64,000 bases of DNA, from sequence record NC_042013.1; one strand, 5' to 3'. Of this stretch, positions 17,548 to 64,000 are shown piece after piece. Below the pieces are notes generated by a model. It made no database searches. It was not told the DNA's origin and saw only the letters and a list, made by a program, of their open reading frames with translations. The position numbers and the translations under genes were made by a program. How positions within the stretch are numbered: position 1 is the stretch's first letter; each line of letters opens with the position of its first letter.

Positions 17548-19739
<2,192 letters not shown>

Positions 19740-53996: not shown

Positions 53997-54911
53997 TCAA
54001 CCAATTATTTCGTTTTTATACCAATCCACTAAATGTTTGAAGCCATTACAAGAATTTGTCAAATCTTTAACGTCGCGCAAATGTTCGCTAAGACATTTCC
54101 CAAAATATTCACAGCCATTACAAAAATCATTTTTAGAAACGCGTTCTTTTTCGATAAGTGTCCAATTCTCATATTCTGAAAATGTTTCCATTTCCAAGAA
54201 ATATTCGTTATCGTTTTCATCAAATTCCAATACACCAAATTTGCCGGTCGGTGTTATATATACGTGGTCATCTGAAAAGCTATGCGCAAGTCCGTCAATA
54301 ACGTCCTCGATTAAGAATTCATTTACAAATTCAAAATTTTTAGGAATTTCGCTAACTATCCATTTTTTAACGAATTCTTCAAAATCAGAAAAAGAAACGT
54401 CATCAACATTTGCTTGATTGGTACTATAAGGCTTTATTTCAACTGCTTTCAACCTGCTAAACAAATTCAATTCGTTTATCATATTGTCAACATCGAATGT
54501 TATTAATTCTTTTCCTGCAAGCATAAGAATGGAAAAATCTTTATCAAGCATAAGCATGTTGTTACGAACGCTTGCGCTTGCTTGGCGTGCAGTGAAATCG
54601 TAGCTAACAGAAAGATCGACATCATCATCAAGAAAGCCGGGATGAATTCGAGATAGATTTGTAATAACGTTTATAACGCCGCTATAATGCTTGCGGATAA
54701 CGTTCTTCATATCGTACCATTGATGTTCTTTAAGCAACCCAACCTCGCCACCGTATAGGTCTATGGCCGTTATATGGCCTATCTCAGCAAGACGTTTGTC
54801 CAACAAATCAAAATCTATAACTTTAGTATCGGCCAATTGCTTTTCTGTTAGATAGCAAAAGCTGCACCTGAAATTACACCAGTAAAGGGGGTTTAATGAG
54901 ACTTTGGTCAT
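53997..54911 (-). CDS. Radical SAM protein 4 (partial SPASM)
   Basis: CNFRCSFC; YGGEVG; C-terminal CNGCEYFGKC...C. Confidence 0.9.
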   Translation of the reverse strand: MTKVSLNPLYWCNFRCSFCYLTEKQLADTKVIDFDLLDKRLAEIGHITAIDLYGGEVGLLKEHQWYDMKNVIRKHYSGVINVITNLSRIHPGFLDDDVDLSVSYDFTARQASASVRNNMLMLDKDFSILMLAGKELITFDVDNMINELNLFSRLKAVEIKPYSTNQANVDDVSFSDFEEFVKKWIVSEIPKNFEFVNEFLIEDVIDGLAHSFSDDHVYITPTGKFGVLEFDENDNEYFLEMETFSEYENWTLIEKERVSKNDFCNGCEYFGKCLSEHLRDVKDLTNSCNGFKHLVDWYKNEIIG

Positions 54912-56014
54912 AGTCCATTCAATTCCAAAATGTCTGATGCGAGTGTTTTCATTAGTTTACAATGATCCTCAACTACGTTTGCGGCTTTTAAATCTTTTAC
55001 GGTTTTTCGGCAACCATTACAAATTGCAAACATTGGGCATCCGTAACATTCGTGTTTCATAGAATCGAGTTCAAAGTCTTCCTGTAGGGGTTTAAAGAAT
55101 GCACCATTCATTTCAGCGTCAAAGTCGATAGCCTTGTCCATATCGTCGCCAAATGCACCGCAACTATAGTACCCACCCTCTGGCTGAAGAGTTCTAATAC
55201 CCTCATCACAAGTTCTGTTCTGCGGGCAAATGGTGGCAAAACCACCAAGTCTCTTTCTCATCTGTTTGGTGTTAAATTCCCAATCAGATAGACCTTGCTT
55301 TGCAATATCCACGTATATTTTGTAAATCTTTGATAATTGATATGGTTTACCTTCTTGACCCATTTTATGACCAGTGCGCGGGTCGACAACAACCGGACCT
55401 GAGGCCATTGCATAGTTCAACTTACATTCAACCCCAATTTTTGTACCGTCTTCAAGAATTCTTGCGGGTTGATCATTACTCATTTTCTTAGCAAGGATCA
55501 CATTGTCAATTGCTAAATGTTCATTCTCATCTGTAATAACACTAATAAAGTCAGGGCGATATCCAACATGTTCAAGCATCGCATCCGATACTTTCCACAG
55601 GTCATCTTCGGTGAACAAACTAAGGTCACCTTTAACTCTCCCCGGCCCATAATTAAACGAGGTGTTAACGCCAACACGCCTATTTTTAAACAAATCTTTC
55701 CATTTATTAGGGTTCTTATAAAAAGGCCACAAATTTGATGTAAAGCTAATACTGGTGTCGTCGTATCCATTTGTATCCAAATGGTCAATAATCTTCCAAT
55801 AATATTCAGGTTGGACCATTAATGGATCACCACCATTAACGATAATTGTCTTGGTATCGGGGAATCGCTCAAGGAATCTAAAAATGTCGTTGATATCAAG
55901 TGTTGCCGCATTATTTGCAGATAATTTCGTGCTACTACAAAACGTGCATTTGAAATTGCATGCAACCGTGATTTTTGTTATCAAATCCACTTTTTCAATC
56001 CTCGTATGTTTCAA
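54908..56014 (-). CDS. Radical SAM/SPASM protein 3
   Basis: CNFKCTFC; NGGDPL; C...C...GGYYSC, CYGCPMFAICNGC...C. Confidence 0.92.
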   Translation of the reverse strand: MKHTRIEKVDLITKITVACNFKCTFCSSTKLSANNAATLDINDIFRFLERFPDTKTIIVNGGDPLMVQPEYYWKIIDHLDTNGYDDTSISFTSNLWPFYKNPNKWKDLFKNRRVGVNTSFNYGPGRVKGDLSLFTEDDLWKVSDAMLEHVGYRPDFISVITDENEHLAIDNVILAKKMSNDQPARILEDGTKIGVECKLNYAMASGPVVVDPRTGHKMGQEGKPYQLSKIYKIYVDIAKQGLSDWEFNTKQMRKRLGGFATICPQNRTCDEGIRTLQPEGGYYSCGAFGDDMDKAIDFDAEMNGAFFKPLQEDFELDSMKHECYGCPMFAICNGCRKTVKDLKAANVVEDHCKLMKTLASDILELNGL

Positions 56015-56897
56015 TTTTCTTTAGTATTTTAGCATTTTTTATAGAACCTAACAAGCCCTTTACCGCGTCACTTGATGAGGTGAATGCTATTCTTTTATTT
56101 GCATTGGAATTTATCAATCGTCCAACGGGTATCAAACCGATGGTTTTAATAGCGTGATCATATCTAAATTTTGGATTAAGATAGTCAATTTCTTTTTTAT
56201 ATTTTATTAGATTTTCAACTACCCTACCATGAATTGCGGTATGCTCATCAAAAAATGGTATCTCGAAACCTGCACTTAAAAATGATGGCAGACCAAACTC
56301 GTCTTTCACAATTGCCGTTTTTATGTCATCGATATTAGAATCTGATAAGAATGAATACGGGCGCTTTTCGTACATAGGCGTTGCATAGATATGCCCGTAC
56401 TGAATATCGTGAGTTATATAATCAATCCAGCTTTCTTCGAATTCAACAATGGTTTTATGGTTAAAACGAATTGTACCAAATACTGATTCGTTTGATCTTA
56501 CTTTTTTATCTTTACCATTATGAATCCAGAAACCGATATGTTTAAGTTCCTCTATTAACGGCAGTAAATTCATATCCGCTATAGGTGCGCTAGTAAATGT
56601 ATTCATAACGTGTGACAAAACAGCATTAATAACAGCGGGTGTTATTTTTTTATAATTAGTTCCCAATGCTTTGTGTGTTATGTTTAGATTATGTAATTGT
56701 CCACGAATATTGTTCCATATACGTTCGGCGTCCGAATCACAATCACAAAAATAAGTATCCACTGGATTTGATATTTCCATATCAAATCGCGTAATTGCGG
56801 CTTGCCATGCTTTGGCTGGAGGCGTATCCAAAAATTCCCAATCAAGCCTCTCGGACATATTAAGCCCGCAATCAAACATTGCGCTAATTTGCGTCAT
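55995..56897 (-). CDS. Hypothetical protein in rSAM operon
   Basis: Overlaps/abuts both neighbours. Confidence 0.75.
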   Translation of the reverse strand: MTQISAMFDCGLNMSERLDWEFLDTPPAKAWQAAITRFDMEISNPVDTYFCDCDSDAERIWNNIRGQLHNLNITHKALGTNYKKITPAVINAVLSHVMNTFTSAPIADMNLLPLIEELKHIGFWIHNGKDKKVRSNESVFGTIRFNHKTIVEFEESWIDYITHDIQYGHIYATPMYEKRPYSFLSDSNIDDIKTAIVKDEFGLPSFLSAGFEIPFFDEHTAIHGRVVENLIKYKKEIDYLNPKFRYDHAIKTIGLIPVGRLINSNANKRIAFTSSSDAVKGLLGSIKNAKILKKIETYED

Positions 56898-56898
56898 A

Positions 56899-57237
56899 TC
56901 ACAATTCCTTAAAATATTCGGTGCTTAGCTCGAGCAATTCTTCATCGGAGAGAACAGTGTCAAACATATGATACTTAATTCTGTTGGCGTACTGTATTAG
57001 AATAGTCGAAAGATCAACAGACGTTTTTGCATATTCGGTGTCTATAGTAAGACCGTCTGTTACAAAAATATGTATATGATAAAATTGAATATTGGGTTTT
57101 CTTTTTATCCAAATATACGTGTTTGATTTACTTGAATACAAAAACGAAACGTTATCGTCGGGATAAGATGTTTTAAATCCTATGCGTTCTGCTTTTTGTT
57201 CCAATGATCTTACTGTCGAATTATCATAGTCGTGCAT
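56899..57237 (-). CDS. Hypothetical protein in rSAM operon
   Basis: Overlaps upstream rSAM gene. Confidence 0.65.
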   Translation of the reverse strand: MHDYDNSTVRSLEQKAERIGFKTSYPDDNVSFLYSSKSNTYIWIKRKPNIQFYHIHIFVTDGLTIDTEYAKTSVDLSTILIQYANRIKYHMFDTVLSDEELLELSTEYFKEL

Positions 57238-58327
57238 TTACGATATCTATCTCCGCGTGAACTGGCTTCATCCAGCAATCGTTCATAGTTCTTGACGGGC
57301 CATTGAAATGTTGTTGTAGAAAACAACCAAGACCACATCTGTCGAAATATTTACAGTTTGGACAATCCATCTTCGTTACGAACTTAGATTCAATTTCACC
57401 TGCGGTTTCTGGCGCTTGTTCTTTGTGCGATTGATTAAGTAAAATAGTACAACGTCCTGCTGTTGAATCTGGCATAATAGTATACGTACTTTGGCAAGAC
57501 ATTGCATTGTAATGATTTCCCATCCATTCTCGCACGGGGCTTACATTTGGATAGTTGTTGATCAAATAAACGAACATATCTTTCAATTGATGATCTTTTG
57601 GCGCATTCAAATCAAAATTTTTCTCTGGAGTATAGTAATCAAAAAACACATCAAAGTTTTCGTAAATATAATCGAAATACTTAACGTCTCCATTTAAAAA
57701 CTTTTCAATATTTGGCTTAGTAAGAATTACATTAACCGTTCCGATATACTCTTTATATATTTCAAGATTTCGTCTGAATACTTCCAACGTTTCTTTGTTA
57801 AATCTTGAATGAGGATCAAATGACGTTCCAATAGTCGCGGTTATACCCTCGAGTTTCAAATCGTTCATAAATTTTATAATTCGATCTGTTTTCTCGTGAA
57901 CAAGATTGCTAATGAAACCAAACTTAATAGTTTCATTATTTTCTATTGCCCAATGGTAGATTCTTCTGGTCAATACCAGATAACGTTCCATTATACTATC
58001 ATCAAAAATGTCTTGGAATATTTCACCGCCCATTATGTTAACGGTAAAAGTTTCTTTTCTCATTTTTTTAAGAAGAGTAATAGCATTAACAACGGTGTCA
58101 AACTTATCCTCAATGGTATCAAATCCAAACATACTATCGTGATCTTGATTGCAAAACTTACAAGTAAGATTGCAACTTTCGAAAAGAGTAAGAATTATTT
58201 CGCCATTTGTCGAACGTTTCTTTTTCAACACTGTTTCGGCAAAGGATACTTCTTTTTGTGTCTTTTCGGGTAAAGAATTATAAAGAGTTATGGACCCTTT
58301 GCCAAAAACATATTCACTCATTTTCAA
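57224..58327 (-). CDS. Radical SAM/SPASM protein 2
   Basis: CNLTCKFC; MGGEIF; SCQ...GRC, CPNCKYFDRCGLGC...C. Confidence 0.92.
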   Translation of the reverse strand: MKMSEYVFGKGSITLYNSLPEKTQKEVSFAETVLKKKRSTNGEIILTLFESCNLTCKFCNQDHDSMFGFDTIEDKFDTVVNAITLLKKMRKETFTVNIMGGEIFQDIFDDSIMERYLVLTRRIYHWAIENNETIKFGFISNLVHEKTDRIIKFMNDLKLEGITATIGTSFDPHSRFNKETLEVFRRNLEIYKEYIGTVNVILTKPNIEKFLNGDVKYFDYIYENFDVFFDYYTPEKNFDLNAPKDHQLKDMFVYLINNYPNVSPVREWMGNHYNAMSCQSTYTIMPDSTAGRCTILLNQSHKEQAPETAGEIESKFVTKMDCPNCKYFDRCGLGCFLQQHFNGPSRTMNDCWMKPVHAEIDIVNARL

Positions 58328-59117
58328 TTTTTTCCAGAATTACTCTTTGGGCTTCGATCAAATCTTTATCCGCATCTTCAAGGGTGTAATCGCTTGTTCC
58401 GATGTAATCAAATGCGGCAACCAGCGGATTTCCACTTACTACGAAGTAATCATATAAGCATTTCGAACCATACATGAATTCTTCAAACTGTTTTGTAAAA
58501 TAATGGAATTCGACACCGGGGACGGAATAAAAGATTTCCATAAACAAAGTATTTGAAAACAAATGAACAAAATTCGATCCAAATTCATTAGCATTGTCAA
58601 TGTTGTTAACAGTATCTTTTGGATCACCGAAAGCTTCAACATACGCAAGTGATGTGTACATTGCAAAAACAACCATAGAATCCATAAGAACACGATGTTT
58701 GTGAACCAAATGATGGTTCTGTTCTATAAATTCTGCAATTTCTTCTGTTGAAAGATATGGTTTATCGAAACATTTATTATAGGTATCAATACCTTTCGAC
58801 ATACACAACACTGAAGCAAATGCATTACTTAGTACAGGAATAGGCGCAATGGTGCGAGTTTCAATATACTCTTTAAGTAATGTAAATCGTTCCTCTTTTG
58901 ACGTTGCGTCGGTAATTGAAAGATCGCAATCAATCTGCAAATTACCAACGTACGTTAAGAATTTTTTATCTTTGAATAGACTGTTATCATAATCGATTAA
59001 GAAAACGATATCTGGATTTGAAAATTTTTCGCGTAACAAATCAATGTCAATAGGCGCGATAGTCTTTCTAATATCTTCATCTTTAACGCTATAGATATCA
59101 ATCATTTTATTCTCCAA
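58314..59117 (-). CDS. Hypothetical protein in rSAM operon
   Basis: Starts immediately after substrate gene stop. Confidence 0.8.
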   Translation of the reverse strand: MENKMIDIYSVKDEDIRKTIAPIDIDLLREKFSNPDIVFLIDYDNSLFKDKKFLTYVGNLQIDCDLSITDATSKEERFTLLKEYIETRTIAPIPVLSNAFASVLCMSKGIDTYNKCFDKPYLSTEEIAEFIEQNHHLVHKHRVLMDSMVVFAMYTSLAYVEAFGDPKDTVNNIDNANEFGSNFVHLFSNTLFMEIFYSVPGVEFHYFTKQFEEFMYGSKCLYDYFVVSGNPLVAAFDYIGTSDYTLEDADKDLIEAQRVILEKIENE

Positions 59118-60008
59118 TTAACGGCGTGAACGACTATTGTGGCAAGATGCGTGACAGGACGAATGGCAAAAATCAACGCCGATACTTGCAGTAACGTTTG
59201 CTGACTGATACCACATATTCTTCATACGGTCGAATACTGTTACAAGCCCATCTGCGGAAATGTATTTTCCAACTTGCTGTCCGTTAGAACTTGGTCCAGA
59301 AATAGGATCGCCAAAAACGGTGTTCAAGATAGCAACATATTCTGGAGCAGACCTAAAAGGCTCAGCCATAGAACCATAGTCGCGGGTATTTAGGAAAATA
59401 CCATAAGTGTACCATTCAGTAATATCACCCATATTATATCCGTTAAATGGCATAACTTTACCATTAAACGTTGTTGGATATGATTTTGAATTAAACGGTT
59501 GGTTAGTTGTCGCGAAACGAGCAATGAAGTTAATAACACGAACACGCGACATGATACTCGTATAATTCGCTACAGCATTTGCAACTGAACTAGGATTAGA
59601 TGTACTGATAACAGAGTTAGGAGGATTATCCTGATTAACTTCTGCGAATACTGTTTGACCCTCAATAACTTGGCCTGCGGTCTGTGGTACTTGCCCGCCA
59701 TTAGGAATATCAACACTAGGCGGTCCAAATGCAGCAGGGATAGAGCCAACATTTCGTGCCGCGCCGAAATCACCACCGGGGCTTTGTGGCATAAAGCCAC
59801 CACCACCGGGTGTTGCGTTCATAGGATCATATACGTATACACCAATTAGTGACTGATCGCTAATAGTAGGAACATTGTCACGATGCCACCTGATGGAAGA
59901 GTTTACTTGATTGACAAACCCCTCTCTGAATTTTCCAAGAATATCATCTAATGCGCCGCCAGATGTTTCGCGTGCACGAATTAGCTCTCCTCTGGTTGGA
60001 TTTGCCAT
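59118..60008 (-). CDS. Gly/Pro-rich protein ending (CHxS)3-RSRR; candidate rSAM substrate
   Basis: C-terminus FCHSSCHASCHNSRSRR; GGAGG SD. Confidence 0.85.
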   Translation of the reverse strand: MANPTRGELIRARETSGGALDDILGKFREGFVNQVNSSIRWHRDNVPTISDQSLIGVYVYDPMNATPGGGGFMPQSPGGDFGAARNVGSIPAAFGPPSVDIPNGGQVPQTAGQVIEGQTVFAEVNQDNPPNSVISTSNPSSVANAVANYTSIMSRVRVINFIARFATTNQPFNSKSYPTTFNGKVMPFNGYNMGDITEWYTYGIFLNTRDYGSMAEPFRSAPEYVAILNTVFGDPISGPSSNGQQVGKYISADGLVTVFDRMKNMWYQSANVTASIGVDFCHSSCHASCHNSRSRR

Positions 60009-60010
60009 AT

Positions 60011-61069
60011 TTAGTCCTCCTTCAAGAACATTTCAAACAGTTCATAATTATTTATGGTCTTCAAATGCTTAATCATGCTCTTTGGACTCGCGCATACATT
60101 ACCTTGCCATAGCATTTGCTGACAATCCCCGTTACAAATATCAAAAACAGGGCAATGATAACAAGCAGGATTACGAAATGCTTCGCACGCAATCTTTTTC
60201 ATTCTACCGGGATTATAAAGAAGCGTATTAATATCATCGTCAAGGTGGCCGTAATTATTGATTGGTGCATCATTAGGACATCCTCCAATCGATCCATCTG
60301 GATTGATAGTGAACATTTTGGTTTCACAATTTCTGCAAAAAACGCCACCGGTATGACCTCGATTGAATTTCTCAAGGATGCCATTCATAAAGACATTTTT
60401 AGGAGCCCATTCCCAAGCTTTTGTTTCAACAGATTGGTGCCACATTTTAAGGAACCATTCATCCATTTCAATGTTTGACGGGAATACATTTTGACTACCA
60501 ACAGCATTACCGTGGGGTGTAATACGTTCCAGTGATACCCATTTAACCCCTAGTTCTGCTGCCATTCTAAATAGTTCGATTGGTTCCTTTTGAATGGTTT
60601 TCTTACTCAACGAAACCATTAAGGTAACCTCAAATCCCTCATCAACAAGTGTCTTTAGATTTTTTCTCCAAAGTGATTCTTGCTTCTCATTTTCAAATCG
60701 AATTCCGTCATCCCAACTGGTTGCAATATATGGAAACATTGCTTCTTTCATAAATTCCAATTTTTCATCATCGAGAGTATATGTTAAGTTTGTACAAGCT
60801 GCCCAACGCATATTAGGGAATAAATCTTTACATTCATTCCAAACTTTTCTCATATCTGCAACGGGCGCAAGAAATGGTTCACCGCCGTGAAATTCAACGG
60901 TAACGTGACGCAATGTTGGTTGTGCGTGATGTAAACGTTTAAACCAATCAATTGTTTTATCTGGATCAAAATATATCTTTTTTCCAAATCTGCCGGATGT
61001 AAAACAATGTGCACAATTCAATTGGCAAGTTTCGGTTGTTTTAAGATATATCTGCAATTCTTTAAGCAT
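60011..61069 (-). CDS. Radical SAM/SPASM protein 1
   Basis: CQLNCAHC; FHGGEPF; CRNC...GSIGGC, CYHCPVFDICNGDC...C. Confidence 0.93.
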   Translation of the reverse strand: MLKELQIYLKTTETCQLNCAHCFTSGRFGKKIYFDPDKTIDWFKRLHHAQPTLRHVTVEFHGGEPFLAPVADMRKVWNECKDLFPNMRWAACTNLTYTLDDEKLEFMKEAMFPYIATSWDDGIRFENEKQESLWRKNLKTLVDEGFEVTLMVSLSKKTIQKEPIELFRMAAELGVKWVSLERITPHGNAVGSQNVFPSNIEMDEWFLKMWHQSVETKAWEWAPKNVFMNGILEKFNRGHTGGVFCRNCETKMFTINPDGSIGGCPNDAPINNYGHLDDDINTLLYNPGRMKKIACEAFRNPACYHCPVFDICNGDCQQMLWQGNVCASPKSMIKHLKTINNYELFEMFLKED

Positions 61070-61646
61070 ATCGTTCTTCCACGTTCCAAAAATTATAATA
61101 GCCGAAACTCAGCATAACGGTATCTGTTATGTTGGTTGCACAATGACGAATGCCGTTTGGCATATATAACCAATCGCCTTCATTTAACATATGAACGCCC
61201 GTTTCTGTTTCCATTTTTTTAGTACCGGAAACCATATAACAGAATACATCCGAATCGTCGTCGTGCCATCCAAACGATCCTTTACCGGCAAAACCCACAA
61301 ACATATGAACATTACAGGGTTTACTATTTAGCCGTGATATATCTTGCGCTAAGGAAAATATTTCTTCAGAATAAGTTTCCATATTTTCAACTTTAATAGG
61401 AAAACCTGAATTCATAGAATCGGAGATAAACCCTAATTGGTTCATAAGGCCATTTTTATCTTGGATATTATAACTTCTATCAAATGAGCCATCGTCATTG
61501 AGAGTAATGATTTTAACATAATCATAATCAATTGCTTTAGAATTCATCATCGCTGATGATATTGTTTTATCAATAGCAACTGGATAATTGAATTGGTAGC
61601 TTTCAAATTTGTCTAAAACGGTACGCGTTAAGAATTGAGAAATCAT
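61062..61646 (-). CDS. JmjC/cupin-like Fe(II)/2OG oxygenase
   Basis: FGWHDDDSDVF (HxD), GTKK, GDWLYMPNGIRHCA (distal His). Confidence 0.82.
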   Translation of the reverse strand: MISQFLTRTVLDKFESYQFNYPVAIDKTISSAMMNSKAIDYDYVKIITLNDDGSFDRSYNIQDKNGLMNQLGFISDSMNSGFPIKVENMETYSEEIFSLAQDISRLNSKPCNVHMFVGFAGKGSFGWHDDDSDVFCYMVSGTKKMETETGVHMLNEGDWLYMPNGIRHCATNITDTVMLSFGYYNFWNVEERYA

Positions 61647-61712
61647 GTTATTAGTTCCAAGTTATAAATTGAACGTACCATTGATTTATAAGGATTTCAA
61701 TAAAATAATGTG

Positions 61713-61764
61713 TTGACATTATTTTTGAATAGTGTATAACTGAAACATCGAAACGTTGAAGGAG
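61713..61764 (+). promoter_or_regulatory. Early promoter with leader box (repeat copy 1)
   Basis: TTGACA-N16-TATAAC, ATCGAAACG, AAGGAG. Confidence 0.85.
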
Positions 61765-61771
61765 CTTTCAT

Positions 61772-62632: not shown

Positions 62633-64000
62633 TTATTTGGATTTAACCGATGAAAGTACAAGACCAACTTCCTCAGTTTCCTTATCTTCAAGTGCTCGCC
62701 CTACAACCAAGGATTCCTTAATGTCCTCAAGGTATCCACGGTATGCAACCGCAACACCGGGGGTTGAACTTAGTACAAGGCGTTCACCCTTAACTACCGT
62801 TCCAACAACTTTAACAGGAACTCGACCTGTAAGTGCAACAGGAAGTGTTACACCTGATTTAGGATGTGAGTTAAGCAAGAAACCGGGCTTTGTAGAAATT
62901 ACGCCAAAATAACGCGTATCATCATGACCGTTAGTAATTGTAATTTCCGCTGAACCACCGATAGAAACAAGCGTACCTGCCTCATACTTTTCGTCTGCAT
63001 AATAATTTTCTGCCAAGTCAGCATATCGTGCTTTCGTTACTTCACCGTCAAACACGTTTGCATAGATAGTACCCCAACGCTGCGCGTTGTTACCCATATC
63101 AAACTGACCAGCAGGAACTGATGATGCGTCCAATGGAACAAAGTTATTTTTAATTTGTTCTTCGATAACCTCTTCAACAACGTCTCTCGAGATATCTTTA
63201 ATAGAATCTTGACCAGCCTGCGAGAACGAATATGTCCAAGTATATTCATTTGCACCTGTTGCTGCAAAATCAGTTAGATCACCAGAAAGAACGCCTGCTG
63301 CTGTAATCTTTTTACCGTTTGCAAACATTTCTGCTTTTTCAGCGTAATCTGTTTTTTCTGCATAAGTTGCACGTCCGTGTAGATTGATAGTAGCAATATC
63401 GTCTTGACCATCAGGGTCGCTATCGCCAGCGTAAAAATGCTTGGAGAAAATATAGCGCCATTTACTTTCAGTCGTACCAAGATCAAAAACGTTATCTGTT
63501 CCAACCGGGAAATCTGACTGGTCGCGGCGAAGGAATGCGGTAGAGTCCAAACCGTCAAGGGTTTCAGAATCGAATGCAATACCATTCATTTTCATGCCGA
63601 GAAGATGGTTCATGTTCAAACCGGCTGTAAGAACGGTCGAACCTGATTGTCCCGGTTCGTTAGTGTATGTCAAAAAGTCCATATCATCGATTTTGGAATC
63701 TTCAATATCGAAAGGTTCATTTGTCCAAACTGCAACGAGGTCGCCATTAATAACAATTTTAAGAACGTCTACACTCTGACCTGACTGATTAACAATAGTT
63801 GTATACTGCGTATAGTTATTGTCTGTTTTGCTTCCAACTGGACCAACAAGTACCCAACCATTAGGAACAAGCGACTCATCCGCACGTTTTAGATTAGGAG
63901 GGAATGTTCCAGTATTTGCCAAGGTAGCATCGTATGCCATCAACTGACGTTCAGGAAGCATCCACCACAAATCACCCTCTTGTGGGTCTGGTGGAGGGTT
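62633..64000 (-). CDS. Tail fibre-like structural protein with C-terminal chaperone/autoprotease-like domain (5' end off window)
   Basis: Frame open to window edge (NPPPDPQEGDLWWM); RYADLAENY, GVISTKPGFLLN, PVALTGRVPVKV. Confidence 0.75.
   Translation of the reverse strand, partial: NPPPDPQEGDLWWMLPERQLMAYDATLANTGTFPPNLKRADESLVPNGWVLVGPVGSKTDNNYTQYTTIVNQSGQSVDVLKIVINGDLVAVWTNEPFDIEDSKIDDMDFLTYTNEPGQSGSTVLTAGLNMNHLLGMKMNGIAFDSETLDGLDSTAFLRRDQSDFPVGTDNVFDLGTTESKWRYIFSKHFYAGDSDPDGQDDIATINLHGRATYAEKTDYAEKAEMFANGKKITAAGVLSGDLTDFAATGANEYTWTYSFSQAGQDSIKDISRDVVEEVIEEQIKNNFVPLDASSVPAGQFDMGNNAQRWGTIYANVFDGEVTKARYADLAENYYADEKYEAGTLVSIGGSAEITITNGHDDTRYFGVISTKPGFLLNSHPKSGVTLPVALTGRVPVKVVGTVVKGERLVLSSTPGVAVAYRGYLEDIKESLVVGRALEDKETEEVGLVLSSVKSK

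Follow-up and report, generated by a model that had tools for sequence, protein, structure and literature searches.

A nine-gene operon of Agrobacterium phage Atu_ph07 that probably matures the Cys/His tail of a virion-associated protein

A compact operon of the giant Agrobacterium phage Atu_ph07 is, in our judgement, probably a self-contained multi-enzyme module for the post-translational maturation of gp170, one of the phage's own proteins, at its 16-residue C-terminal tail, (CHxS)3-R-x-R-R-COOH. The operon occupies positions 53997–61646 of the 64,000-nucleotide stretch of DNA that we analyzed (hereafter the window), which is 100% identical to Atu_ph07; these positions correspond to 115997–123646 of the phage record. 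Its content is a JmjC-like cupin, four radical SAM enzymes, gp170 (296 aa) and three unknown proteins, and we found no published description of such a module in the literature. The initial annotation had proposed a RiPP-like system acting on a Cys/His protein of the phage itself, a proposal now supported by co-occurrence, synteny, one-to-one orthology and proteomics.

The nine open reading frames (ORFs), gp172 to gp164, all lie on the minus strand and are tightly packed over 53997–61646. Computed on the longest ORFs, the successive spacings from gp172 to gp164 are −8, +2, 0, −14, −14, +1, −20 and −4 nt, so the description of a nine-gene operon with overlapping or abutting genes holds, all spacings falling between −20 and +2 nt. 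In the sequence of the divergent intergenic region upstream of gp172 (61647–61771), the octamer TATAAATC at 61690–61683 on the minus strand, 36 nt before the gp172 ATG, differs from the T4-type late-promoter box by one mismatch and offers a hint only of a possible T4-type late promoter for the operon. Exact copies of the T4 box do not exceed the chance expectation in the window, and scans for sigma-70 promoters and terminators stay at background level. Baseplate genes and the tail-fibre-like gp176 lie near the operon in Atu_ph07.

The predicted substrate, gp170 (59118–60008, minus strand; 31.89 kDa), ends in the 16-codon tail CHSSCHASCHNSRSRR (59121–59168, minus strand), the predicted modification site, with the stop codon directly after it. 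The rest of the protein has no Cys and one His. Across the 64-kb window the motif has a single occurrence against a chance expectation of 0, which bears out the earlier remark that the operon holds a single obvious Cys/His substrate. Across the family, the consensus (CHxS)3-R-[G/S]-R-R-stop shows almost no variation and is confined to the C-terminus: it is unchanged in 16 homologs whose identity is 34–42%, and it is kept even where the bodies fall below that range. The stop codon follows RR immediately in 143 of 146 viral matches, a profile search gave 134 of 147 family representatives ending in the tail, and in 133 of 177 family members the tail holds all the Cys. As synonymous codons are mixed across the tail, the constraint acts on its amino acids and not on the DNA. 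The gp170 family comprises 642 protein clusters, almost all metagenomic, and its bodies, which range from 126 to about 310 aa, still form a single homologous family once the tail is left out of the comparison. The AlphaFold model of gp170 (pLDDT 68) yielded no fold match, and a Pfam search found no peptidoglycan-binding domain in the protein.

The tail-bearing protein belongs to a recurrent module consisting of the cupin, rSAM1, the substrate, gp169 and rSAM2–4, with one-to-one orthologs across unrelated phages, as compared in six loci (Atu_ph07, Phosso, RSL2, pPa_SNUABM_DT01 and two metagenomic phages). A broader synteny survey took 120 viral contigs picked by the tail motif alone, with only a short stretch fetched around each. 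Of these tail-bearing loci, 91 contained one or more of the four radical SAM orthologs and 88 contained gp169, so that protein and enzymes do co-occur; no gene is met directly upstream of the substrate more often than rSAM1, with 73 loci, and gp169 directly follows the substrate in 68. Two tandem tail-bearing genes are present in 29 loci. Baseplate or spike genes lie near the module in RSL2 and DT01, and a tail chaperone in locus L005. Chromosomal copies of the module were also observed in predatory Bdellovibrionota, in which the rSAM1–substrate–gp169 adjacency is retained though gene order is shuffled.

All four radical SAM enzymes carry the CxxxCxxC motif, which begins at residues 15, 52, 19 and 12 of rSAM1 to rSAM4 and is invariant in orthologs, and all four match phrog_1802 (E 1e-45 to 1e-78). 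The Pfam Radical_SAM model (PF04055; cut-off 29.5 bits) scores rSAM1 (35.7) and rSAM2 (30.9) above its cut-off and rSAM3 (27.7) and rSAM4 (22.9) below it; motif and family-model match together place all four in the radical SAM superfamily. Their C-terminal regions are less uniform than the initial annotation, which gave SPASM-type auxiliary cysteines to all four, had it. The SPASM pattern (TIGR04085) consists of seven C-terminal Cys, C...C then CX2CX5CX3C...C, for two auxiliary 4Fe-4S clusters. In the six orthologous loci the invariant auxiliary Cys number eight in rSAM1, seven in rSAM2, eight in rSAM3 and four in rSAM4. Thus gp171 (rSAM1, 352 aa; 60011–61069, minus strand) combines C15/C19/C22 with its eight auxiliary Cys in a radical SAM/SPASM architecture; gp168 (rSAM2, 367 aa; 57224–58327, minus strand) has C52/C56/C59 and the canonical 7-Cys SPASM pattern with C278, C293, C322, C325, C331, C335 and C351; and gp165 (rSAM3, 368 aa as the longest ORF; 54908–56014, minus strand, with a start at 55990 favoured by RefSeq and orthologs) has C19/C23/C26 and an auxiliary pattern that includes CX2CX5CX2C. 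By comparison, gp164 (rSAM4, 304 aa; 53997–54911, minus strand) has C12/C16/C19 and the reduced motif CX2CX5C...C (C264, C267, C273 and C288), and with these four auxiliary Cys only it is not a full SPASM protein, so the earlier wording was slightly overstated. The SPASM-domain model (cut-off 27 bits) is passed by rSAM1 only, at 30 bits, with rSAM2 at 15.5, rSAM3 at 20.4 and rSAM4 giving no match.

RefSeq calls three of the four radical SAM genes of the operon. Its gp164 is a 237-aa hypothetical protein that starts at an internal ATG and thereby loses CxxxCxxC; the alignment with orthologs begins at residue 1 of the long ORF and not at the RefSeq start, and the orthologs annotated as radical SAM share 46–68% identity with rSAM4. 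The most conserved enzyme of the set is rSAM3 (54–75% identity to orthologs), and rSAM2 has orthologs in all six loci. Identity among the four paralogs is only 20–25%, ortholog identity is 31–81%, and each enzyme has its own ortholog in every lineage examined; by sequence comparison the four are old paralogs. In NCBIfam, the best matches of rSAM1 and most matches of rSAM2 and rSAM3 are to peptide- or protein-modifying SPASM families (DynA, PapB, DarE, anSME, HxsB/C), and the best match of rSAM4 is prokaryotic viperin; weak structure-profile matches of rSAM1 include 8vpo, anSME and CteB. Since all matches to characterized families fall far short of the respective cut-offs and are for the most part confined to the N-terminal core, the reaction is not firmly readable from them. 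Similarity to NrdG or QueE is at trace level only. With CxxxCxxC beginning at residues 12–52, none of the enzymes has space for an N-terminal recognition domain.

The 194-aa gp172 (61062–61646, minus strand) passes Pfam JmjC_2 (33.8 bits, cut-off 22, E 2.8e-8) as well as Cupin_2 and matches phrog_4992 at 4e-55. Its H128, D130 and H168, together with K143, are invariant in 17 orthologs and form an HxD...H triad plus Lys; triad, basic residue and family model are those of JmjC/cupin Fe(II)-2OG oxygenases, and the protein is predicted to be an Fe(II)/2-oxoglutarate protein hydroxylase. It shares the JmjC_2 match and the triad plus Lys with the JmjC ribosomal oxygenases (MINA53, NO66, YcfD) but is far smaller (about 160–200 aa) and lacks their dimerization and winged-helix domains. 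A profile of gp172 aligns with MINA53 over about 110 positions (E 4e-7), and in a PDB search generic bacterial cupins outscore MINA53. MINA53 is a protein histidyl hydroxylase, and the gp170 tail presents three His and three Arg. In other phage lineages there are additional 2OG oxygenases, or else a radical SAM enzyme that weakly matches a B12-binding domain.

For the remaining products, gp169, gp167 and gp166, as for gp170, NCBIfam returned no matches at E up to 0.1. The 267-aa gp169 (58314–59117, minus strand; 263 aa from the RefSeq start) matches phrog_20767 at 5e-123 and has no PDB match by sequence or, with its AlphaFold model (pLDDT 78), by fold; it is a core accessory protein of the module and possibly a substrate-handling partner. 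As neither gp170 nor gp169 has a fold with a known counterpart, the particle location of the one and the helper role of the other are read from synteny alone. The 112-aa gp167 (56899–57237, minus strand) is lineage-specific, with no homolog among the fetched loci and no family match in Pfam, NCBIfam and PHROG searches; the Phosso protein at its position shows no significant similarity (E 0.24). The 300-aa gp166 (55995–56897, minus strand) is common to Sinorhizobium phage Phosso only (28% identity), with no homolog beyond Phosso among the fetched loci and no family match in the same three collections.

Published data bear directly on the fate of the products. The Atu_ph07 virion proteome lists gp170 at 31.89 kDa, which equals our calculated mass, with 8 peptides and 35% coverage, and the other eight operon products are absent from the list (PMC6102473, Table S5). 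This lends support to the virion appendage that had been put forward as one option for the modified protein, virion proteomics having been named as a check. The preparation was PEG-purified only and included a few non-structural proteins (RNR, topoisomerase, SSB; PMC6102473), for which reason gp170 is a likely rather than a proven virion protein. It was detected in gel bands 1–9 with its maximum in band 1, the top slice, whereas most other 30–35 kDa proteins peak in bands 7–8 (PMC6102473). The gel loading buffer lists no reductant (PMC6102473), and disulfides through the three tail Cys or an SDS-resistant oligomer could give the band-1 signal without radical chemistry.

Among known systems, the nearest analogue is the bacterial HXS anti-phage defence system, in which the effector HxsA, with five His-Xaa-Ser repeats, is encoded with the radical SAM enzymes HxsB and HxsC and with HxsD; the repeats carry a covalent modification (+8 Da, seen on an SHRSS motif), none of them is dispensable, and the system blocks phage DNA entry in the periplasm (PMC13128918). 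In both, a whole protein rather than a short peptide bears tandem basic-rich H-x-S repeats, and its gene has as neighbours at least two radical SAM genes together with a gene for a partner protein that is small or unknown. In the phage, however, each repeat begins with an invariant Cys, and three repeats stand at the extreme C-terminus followed by R-x-R-R, as opposed to five in HxsA, which has a peptidoglycan-binding domain and undergoes N-terminal processing with export. The phage module has four radical SAM enzymes plus a cupin, against two radical SAM enzymes in HXS, and is phage-owned, with its product in virion preparations rather than in the periplasm. The family models do not assign it to HXS: scores against HxsB (TIGR03978) and HxsC (TIGR03977) are 32.4 bits versus 370 and 24.7 versus 268, and HxsA and HxsD give no match, the H-x-S repeats (three, each after Cys) being present.

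Triceptides are RiPPs with three-residue cyclophanes made by the radical SAM/SPASM 3-CyFEs HaaB, HtkB, YhhB, XyeB and FxsB, and HAA, HNR and HTK motifs, frequently arranged as tandem repeats, are known to be cross-linked from His-C2 to the C-beta of residue 3 (PMC11499958). The three H-x-S units of the gp170 tail fit the aromatic-X-X motif of this class, whose bacterial precursors are short leader–core peptides, usually with a single maturase, and have no counterpart to the invariant Cys and C-terminal Arg cluster. Against FxsB, YhhB, AmcB and XyeB, rSAM1 and rSAM3 score 22–27 bits (cut-offs 362–450), over the N-terminal core only. The best-scoring characterized relatives of rSAM1 are the ranthipeptide/sactipeptide maturases (PapB, CteB) and anSME. 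PapB acts on Cys-containing repeats (CX3D/E) and is reported to be able to use a C-terminal carboxylate (PMC12373016); anSME acts on Cys/Ser of a folded protein and, like the phage enzymes, has no N-terminal recognition domain. The scores of rSAM1, about a tenth of the cut-offs (43.8 bits versus 340 for PapB, 35.9 versus 349 for anSME), do not place it in either family; the tail has no Asp/Glu acceptor and lacks the C/S-x-P-x-R motif of anaerobic sulfatase maturases. The CXXX-repeat peptide system (TIGR04115 maturase) is a lead from its family name, the gp170 tail being literally a C-x-x-x repeat; rSAM2 matches it at E 0.0014 (18 bits, cut-off 350; N-terminal core only), and a tested relationship is not implied. 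Nor is this a classical RiPP pathway: the precursor is a conserved protein of 126–310 aa that stays in virion preparations, not a short leader–core peptide, and the operon has no maturase recognition domain, protease or transporter. The logic of the module resembles that of a RiPP pathway, but what it would mature is a protein.

How might maturation proceed? All nine genes would be co-expressed on a tightly coupled transcript. Inside the infected cell, four radical SAM enzymes of distinct function, three with SPASM-type auxiliary clusters and none with an N-terminal peptide-recognition domain, would act on the Cys/His/Ser repeats of an exposed, disordered tail, and the JmjC-like Fe(II)/2-oxoglutarate oxygenase would hydroxylate it, most plausibly on His or Arg. 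Because four conserved, non-redundant enzymes face three identical repeats, several successive reactions per repeat are favoured over one enzyme per repeat. Three His-C2 to Ser-C-beta cyclophanes of three residues each, Cys thioether cross-links, Cys/Ser oxidation and His/Arg hydroxylation are the candidate chemistries. With gp169 acting as a non-virion helper, finished gp170 alone would enter the particle, probably at or near the tail or baseplate, where the modified tail may give rise to a higher-order form that is covalent or very stable, to a site for metal binding or redox activity, or to both. We infer each of these steps; only the presence of gp170 in virion preparations comes from published data. 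It counts against this reading that a pathway combining oxygen-sensitive radical SAM enzymes with oxygen-dependent oxygenases is unusual.

Other explanations can be weighed against the same observations. The tail could be the core of a released product, with the gp170 body as a long leader or scaffold, and a cut peptide or small cofactor in the style of mycofactocin or PQQ would then act on the host or competitors. The tail does lie at the extreme C-terminus, as does the core in mycofactocin-type precursors, the radical SAM/SPASM-plus-oxygenase logic resembles cofactor and RiPP pathways, and the published gp170 coverage of 35% does not show that the tail is retained. We nevertheless regard release as unlikely: Pfam, NCBIfam and PHROG searches found no protease, transporter or immunity gene in the operon, nor are there such genes among the examined neighbours of related cassettes; the body is conserved as one family even without the tail; gp170 is recovered from virion preparations with up to 8 peptides; and the tandem tail-bearing genes of 29 loci fit structural paralogs better than precursors.

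Alternatively, the tail may be a Cys/His metal- or Fe-S-binding site that is not a radical SAM substrate, the enzymes acting on something else, for example nucleotides, DNA, lipid or a host protein, and accompanying gp170 on other grounds. Three Cys and three His are a plausible ligand set, and in other contractile systems the spike tip is a site of Fe or Zn binding. All four enzymes weakly match viperin N-terminally, rSAM3 and rSAM4 also MoaA, but these matches cover the generic radical SAM core only, and the SPASM-type auxiliary clusters and best-scoring families are those of peptide or protein modifiers. Some DNA hypermodification pathways of phages are reported to involve radical SAM enzymes (PMC8989533); no nucleotide-metabolism gene, however, is constant in the module, and the rSAM1–substrate–gp169 adjacency in about 70 loci, kept in the shuffled Bdellovibrionota, argues for a direct functional link; we regard this alternative as quite improbable. 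An earlier view of phage radical SAM clusters, put forward for Campylobacter phages with 11–12 radical SAM genes and for marine T4-like genomes (PMC2853527, PMC5332604), would make the enzymes auxiliary metabolic genes by which the phage boosts the Fe-S or anaerobic metabolism of its host, with gp170 an unrelated structural gene. It can explain neither the strict co-occurrence with an invariant C-terminal motif nor four anciently diverged paralogs, each a single-copy ortholog, and we consider it highly improbable here.

Maturation of the gp170 tail, then, is the reading we prefer, and a more tentative and in itself doubtful extension would see in the matured tail a novel cross-link, or a metallo/redox cofactor, derived from the protein itself; installed on a virion protein associated with tail or baseplate, it would serve cell-envelope penetration or DNA delivery. 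HXS, which uses radical SAM-matured basic HxS repeats and blocks phage DNA entry, might then be its functional or evolutionary counterpart, and the Bdellovibrionota copies a third use of the same chemistry. The maturation reading itself would imply an undescribed chemical finishing step for proteins of the virus particle, encoded by a module present in hundreds of uncultured phages.

The operon lies in the 490-kb genome of Agrobacterium phage Atu_ph07, a jumbo myovirus (Polybotosvirus), where record positions 115997-123646 correspond to window 53997-61646 at 100% identity. The nine-gene operon that the initial annotation placed in this interval is borne out, as nine minus-strand ORFs run from gp172 to gp164 and in their longest forms overlap or abut one another (-8, +2, 0, -14, -14, +1, -20, and -4 nt). 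All on the minus strand, these are, in order, the 194-aa cupin gp172; the radical SAM enzyme gp171 (rSAM1); gp170, a 296-aa protein with the C-terminus CHSSCHASCHNSRSRR; gp169; a second radical SAM enzyme, gp168 (rSAM2); gp167 and gp166; a third, gp165 (rSAM3); and, in ninth place, gp164 (rSAM4), a 304-aa ORF at window 53997-54911. RefSeq annotates only three radical SAM genes, as against the four in the operon, and gives gp164 (record 115997-116710) as a 237-aa "hypothetical protein" whose internal ATG start drops the CxxxCxxC motif; orthologs that carry a radical SAM annotation align with the 304-aa ORF from its first residue (residue 1) onward. Promoter and terminator scans returned no signal above shuffle background, and the exact T4 late box was not enriched.

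The feature around which the operon seems to be organized is the end of gp170, whose C-terminal peptide reads DFCHSSCHASCHNSR plus SRR. Proteins of this kind are highly variable in length and sequence yet share the ending CHTSCHASCHSSRSRR, CHSSCHTSCHGSRGRR, or CHTSCHTSCHSARGRR, and in an alignment of 16 homologs at 34-42% identity the final 16 residues, hereafter the tail, are nearly the sole long invariant stretch. Column by column, the tail comprises three C-H-x-S repeats, with S, A, or T at the variable position of the first and G, S, or T at that of the third, whose Ser is kept at 93%, followed by R, G (79%) or S, R, and R. No fourth repeat occurs among 177 members, and in 133 of these cysteine is confined to the tail. 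A degenerate DNA pattern for the tail recovered at least 120 IMG/VR contigs and 40 genome contigs; in 143 of the 146 viral matches listed, the stop codon directly follows the last Arg. The two Cys codons, the two His codons, and both Ser codon families are in free use within the tail, and selection therefore acts on the peptide, not the DNA.

The tail-carrying ORFs fall into sizes of ~126 aa (frequently in tandem), 137-140, 170-230, 257, and 296-309 aa. When the tail-less bodies are compared profile to profile, the size classes are joined via the 170-230-aa class (hhalign probability 92.7-99.7%), the 296-309-aa class that includes gp170 matching directly only to that class; because of these links, the carriers fit, at the level of sequence, a single family in which some members have insertions. 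When 1.84 billion representative proteins were scanned in full with HMMER, 642 clusters passed E ≤ 1e-3, of which 249 also passed E ≤ 1e-10, and among the representatives listed the canonical tail is terminal in 134 of 147, the others being truncated or small variants. Many members of the ~640 substrate-family clusters, taken at 50% identity, reside on contigs of ordinary phage size. Two adjacent ~126-aa tail-bearing genes, ~385 bp apart, occur in 29 loci among the matches listed (the IMG/VR loci L009, L020, L026, L064, and L101 are examples), apparently sharing one enzyme set, and at least one 151-kb contig carries a third tail-bearing copy elsewhere (loci L064 and L079). The gp170 protein is without structural relatives in the searches made: its profile had no match among PDB sequences, its AlphaFold model (pLDDT 68 on 16 homologs) drew nothing below E 0.7 in Foldseek against the PDB, and against BFVD it retrieved its own family only.

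What might act on such a tail? The initial annotation held that all four radical SAM enzymes keep CxxxCxxC and C-terminal auxiliary-cluster cysteines. The first part stands for all four, each of which also matches phrog_1802; the second holds for rSAM1-3, with seven to eight auxiliary cysteines invariant across orthologs in SPASM-like patterns, and needs correction for rSAM4, in which only four are kept. The best NCBIfam matches of rSAM1, and most of those of rSAM2 and rSAM3, are peptide- or protein-modifying radical SAM/SPASM families (DynA, PapB, DarE, anSME, TIGR04083, HxsB/HxsC, and the cyclophane synthases FxsB, YhhB, and XyeB), and the best match of rSAM4 is prokaryotic viperin; these scores reach about one tenth of the cut-offs for the respective families, and the matches are mostly confined to the N-terminal core. 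With profiles of six orthologs, rSAM1 weakly matched the cyclopropyl synthase entry 8vpo, anSME, and CteB in the PDB, rSAM2 found no PDB relative, and the matches of rSAM3 and rSAM4 were limited to the MoaA, lysine aminomutase, or viperin core. PADLOC likewise returned nothing but generic viperin-core matches. Since CxxxCxxC begins at residues 12-52, an N-terminal RiPP recognition domain cannot fit in these enzymes, which in this respect are like the protein-acting anSME. The cupin gp172 matches Pfam JmjC_2 and Cupin_2 above cut-off, conserves H128, D130, and H168 (HxD...H) together with K143 in all 17 orthologs examined, and aligns as a profile over ~110 positions with MINA53, a histidyl hydroxylase of a ribosomal protein; candidate residues for hydroxylation in the tail are its three His and three Arg.

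The AlphaFold model of gp169 (pLDDT 78 on 52 homologs) has a confident N-terminal alpha/beta domain together with helices, and it matched nothing in the PDB by profile or by fold. We considered a PqqD-like recognition element for this protein; in a comparison of secondary structure by eye, the required strand-strand-strand-helix-helix-helix order is absent. Neither gp166 nor gp167 matched any family, and both are restricted to Atu_ph07 and Sinorhizobium phage Phosso, the latter being the only source of gp166 homologs; we treat the two as lineage-specific additions.

By tblastn and locus comparison, the module genes are found in Phosso, in the Ralstonia/Burkholderia Chiangmaivirus group (RSL2, RSF1, FLC6, and relatives), in Pseudomonas phage pPa_SNUABM_DT01, and in metagenomic phage contigs. 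An all-against-all comparison resolves one-to-one orthologs of the cupin, rSAM1, the tail-bearing protein, gp169, and rSAM2-4; because identity is 31-81% among orthologs as against 20-25% between the four radical SAM enzymes, the latter are ancient paralogs with separate, retained roles. In place of gp166 and gp167, other lineages add 2OG-Fe(II) oxygenases, a ~355-aa protein of no assigned family, or a radical SAM enzyme that weakly matches the B12-binding domain. Linkage was assessed with HMMs of the six core genes against the ORFs of loci retrieved through the tail alone. Of the 120 viral loci listed, 91 have one or more of the four radical SAM orthologs, 88 have gp169, and 64 have the cupin, many of these stretches being only a few kb long; among the matches listed, the substrate has rSAM1 as its direct upstream neighbour in 73 cases and gp169 as its direct downstream neighbour in 68. 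Only 15 of 50,697 cultured-phage records carry the module, all of them jumbo phages with soil or plant-associated proteobacterial hosts. The Rak2-like relatives of Atu_ph07 are not among these carriers, which suggests an accessory, horizontally mobile module. With RSL2 as query, the tail-bearing protein appeared in further cultured phages of the Chiangmaivirus group alone, and for the radical SAM cluster of RP12/RP31, considered as a further instance, no link was established.

In Bdellovibrionota MAGs, too, the gene set stays together, in shuffled order, on large chromosomal contigs (up to 1.29 Mb), where it may represent prophages or domesticated modules. Near-complete cassettes (loci L145, L152, L155, L140, and L136) lie on contigs of 110 kb to 1.29 Mb from these predatory bacteria, each with a tail-bearing protein, gp169, and at least two of the rSAM1-4 types, most with 2OG oxygenases, and one with a radical SAM gene of the B12 type; next to one of the loci lies a Peptidase_S74 tail-fibre chaperone domain. 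Some cassettes, viral ones included, have an extra enzyme of ~545-575 aa with only weak matches to B12-binding and radical SAM domains (L007 13729-15363; L155 2152-3879), a hint of an optional C-methylation step. In the Chiangmaivirus group, rSAM2 and rSAM3 flank two dihydrofolate-reductase-like genes within the cassette (RSL2, L003 11954-13103), one annotated as DHFR and the following ORF a Pfam DHFR_1 match. A 45-kb contig from a Methanobacteriota archaeon MAG bin (L168) bears the tail gene, gp169, and rSAM2-4, and may be a mis-binned phage contig.

That the tail-bearing protein belongs to the particle is indicated by published proteomics, in which virion proteins of Atu_ph07 were identified from gel slices by ESI-MS/MS (Attai et al., 2018; PMC6102473). 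Table S5 of that study lists gp170 at 31.89 kDa, exactly our calculated mass, with 8 unique peptides and 35% coverage, and none of the other eight operon products is in the virion list, which derives from a PEG-purified preparation that also contained a few non-structural proteins. The same study has its second virion-gene cluster begin at CDS 170. The neighbourhood is tail-related as well: gp176 has a tail-fibre-like C-terminal part (phrog_19602, 8e-21) and 14 virion peptides (PMC6102473), gp180-182 are baseplate or structural genes, and neighbours elsewhere include a baseplate assembly protein (RSL2), the central spike (DT01), and a tail chaperone (locus L005). The next virion gene upstream, gp176 occupies window 62633-64000 and runs past the window end. 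Outside the window, the homing-endonuclease-like gp178 (phrog_314; L001 23109-23822) sits between the virion genes gp177 and gp180, and within it the annotation divides the terminase large subunit between two adjacent CDSs, gp109 and gp110 (window 17548-19739), both in the published virion proteome.

In the gel, gp170 was detected in bands 1-9 with its maximum in band 1. The other band-1 maxima belong mostly to 75-139 kDa proteins, along with two small proteins with only 1-2 peptides; other 30-35 kDa proteins have their peaks mostly in bands 7-8 (PMC6102473). The concentration of a 32-kDa protein in the uppermost part of a denaturing gel is suggestive of an assembly that is covalent or resists SDS. 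Alternatively, the band-1 signal could reflect disulfides via the three tail cysteines, a possible outcome given that the loading buffer, as described in PMC6102473, contained no reductant.

The initial annotation's proposal of a RiPP-like system modifying the phage's own protein is supported by tail invariance, co-occurrence, synteny, and the recovery of gp170 in virion preparations, and we regard it as probable that the cassette serves to mature the tail of a virion protein. In such a scheme, the gp170 tail would be the substrate, the four non-redundant radical SAM enzymes would carry out successive reactions on each of the three identical repeats, the cupin would hydroxylate His or Arg, gp169 may handle the substrate, and the product would be located at, or close to, the tail or baseplate. 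For any particular chemistry read from these sequences, our confidence is low. The H-x-S of each repeat conforms to the triceptide motif, at which radical SAM enzymes link His-C2 to the third-residue C-beta (PMC11499958), and the invariant cysteines suggest possible thioether formation or oxidation. The core of mycofactocin is C-terminal. The strict free C-terminus of the tail recalls, by analogy, both this arrangement and the carboxylate-directed chemistry of PapB (PMC12373016).

Among known systems, the closest in logic, by analogy, is the bacterial HXS defence, whose effector carries five basic HxS repeats, is matured by two radical SAM enzymes and HxsD, bears a +8 Da modification at an SHRSS motif, and acts from the periplasm to keep phage DNA from entering (PMC13128918). 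The phage module has in common with it the repeat type, multi-enzyme maturation, and a protein-sized substrate, whereas its repeats are Cys-led, three in number, and C-terminal. HxsB/HxsC scores are far under cut-off and HxsA and HxsD have no match; enzyme-family tests for triceptide, ranthipeptide, and anSME membership likewise failed. The module works similarly to a RiPP pathway but lacks a short precursor, recognition element, protease, and exporter. Because the membership tests failed and these hallmarks are missing, we regard it as a new form of protein maturation by radical SAM enzymes, outside every named family. Previous papers listed its genes only as "cupin", "Fe-S oxidoreductase", "radical SAM", or "2OG oxygenase", and others called the abundance of radical SAM proteins in phages puzzling. 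In open-access papers and preprints we found neither a description of the module or a substrate link, an absence that is not proof, nor any radical SAM reaction in the post-translational chemistry of phage particles.

The finding extends from one phage to a large, previously undescribed family. If true, it would explain why genes for radical SAM proteins, "Fe-S oxidoreductases", cupins, and 2OG oxygenases cluster in RSL2/RSF1/FLC6-type and other jumbo phages, a pattern noted long ago, and would supply a phage-side counterpart of the newly described HXS defence. The tail would be a defined 16-residue substrate for four radical SAM families that lie far from characterised enzymes, and with it would come a tractable route into new radical chemistry on Cys, His, and Ser. 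If the tail is indeed processed, many uncultured phages would be spending 5-10 kb on a small, invariant, and chemically elaborate virion structure.
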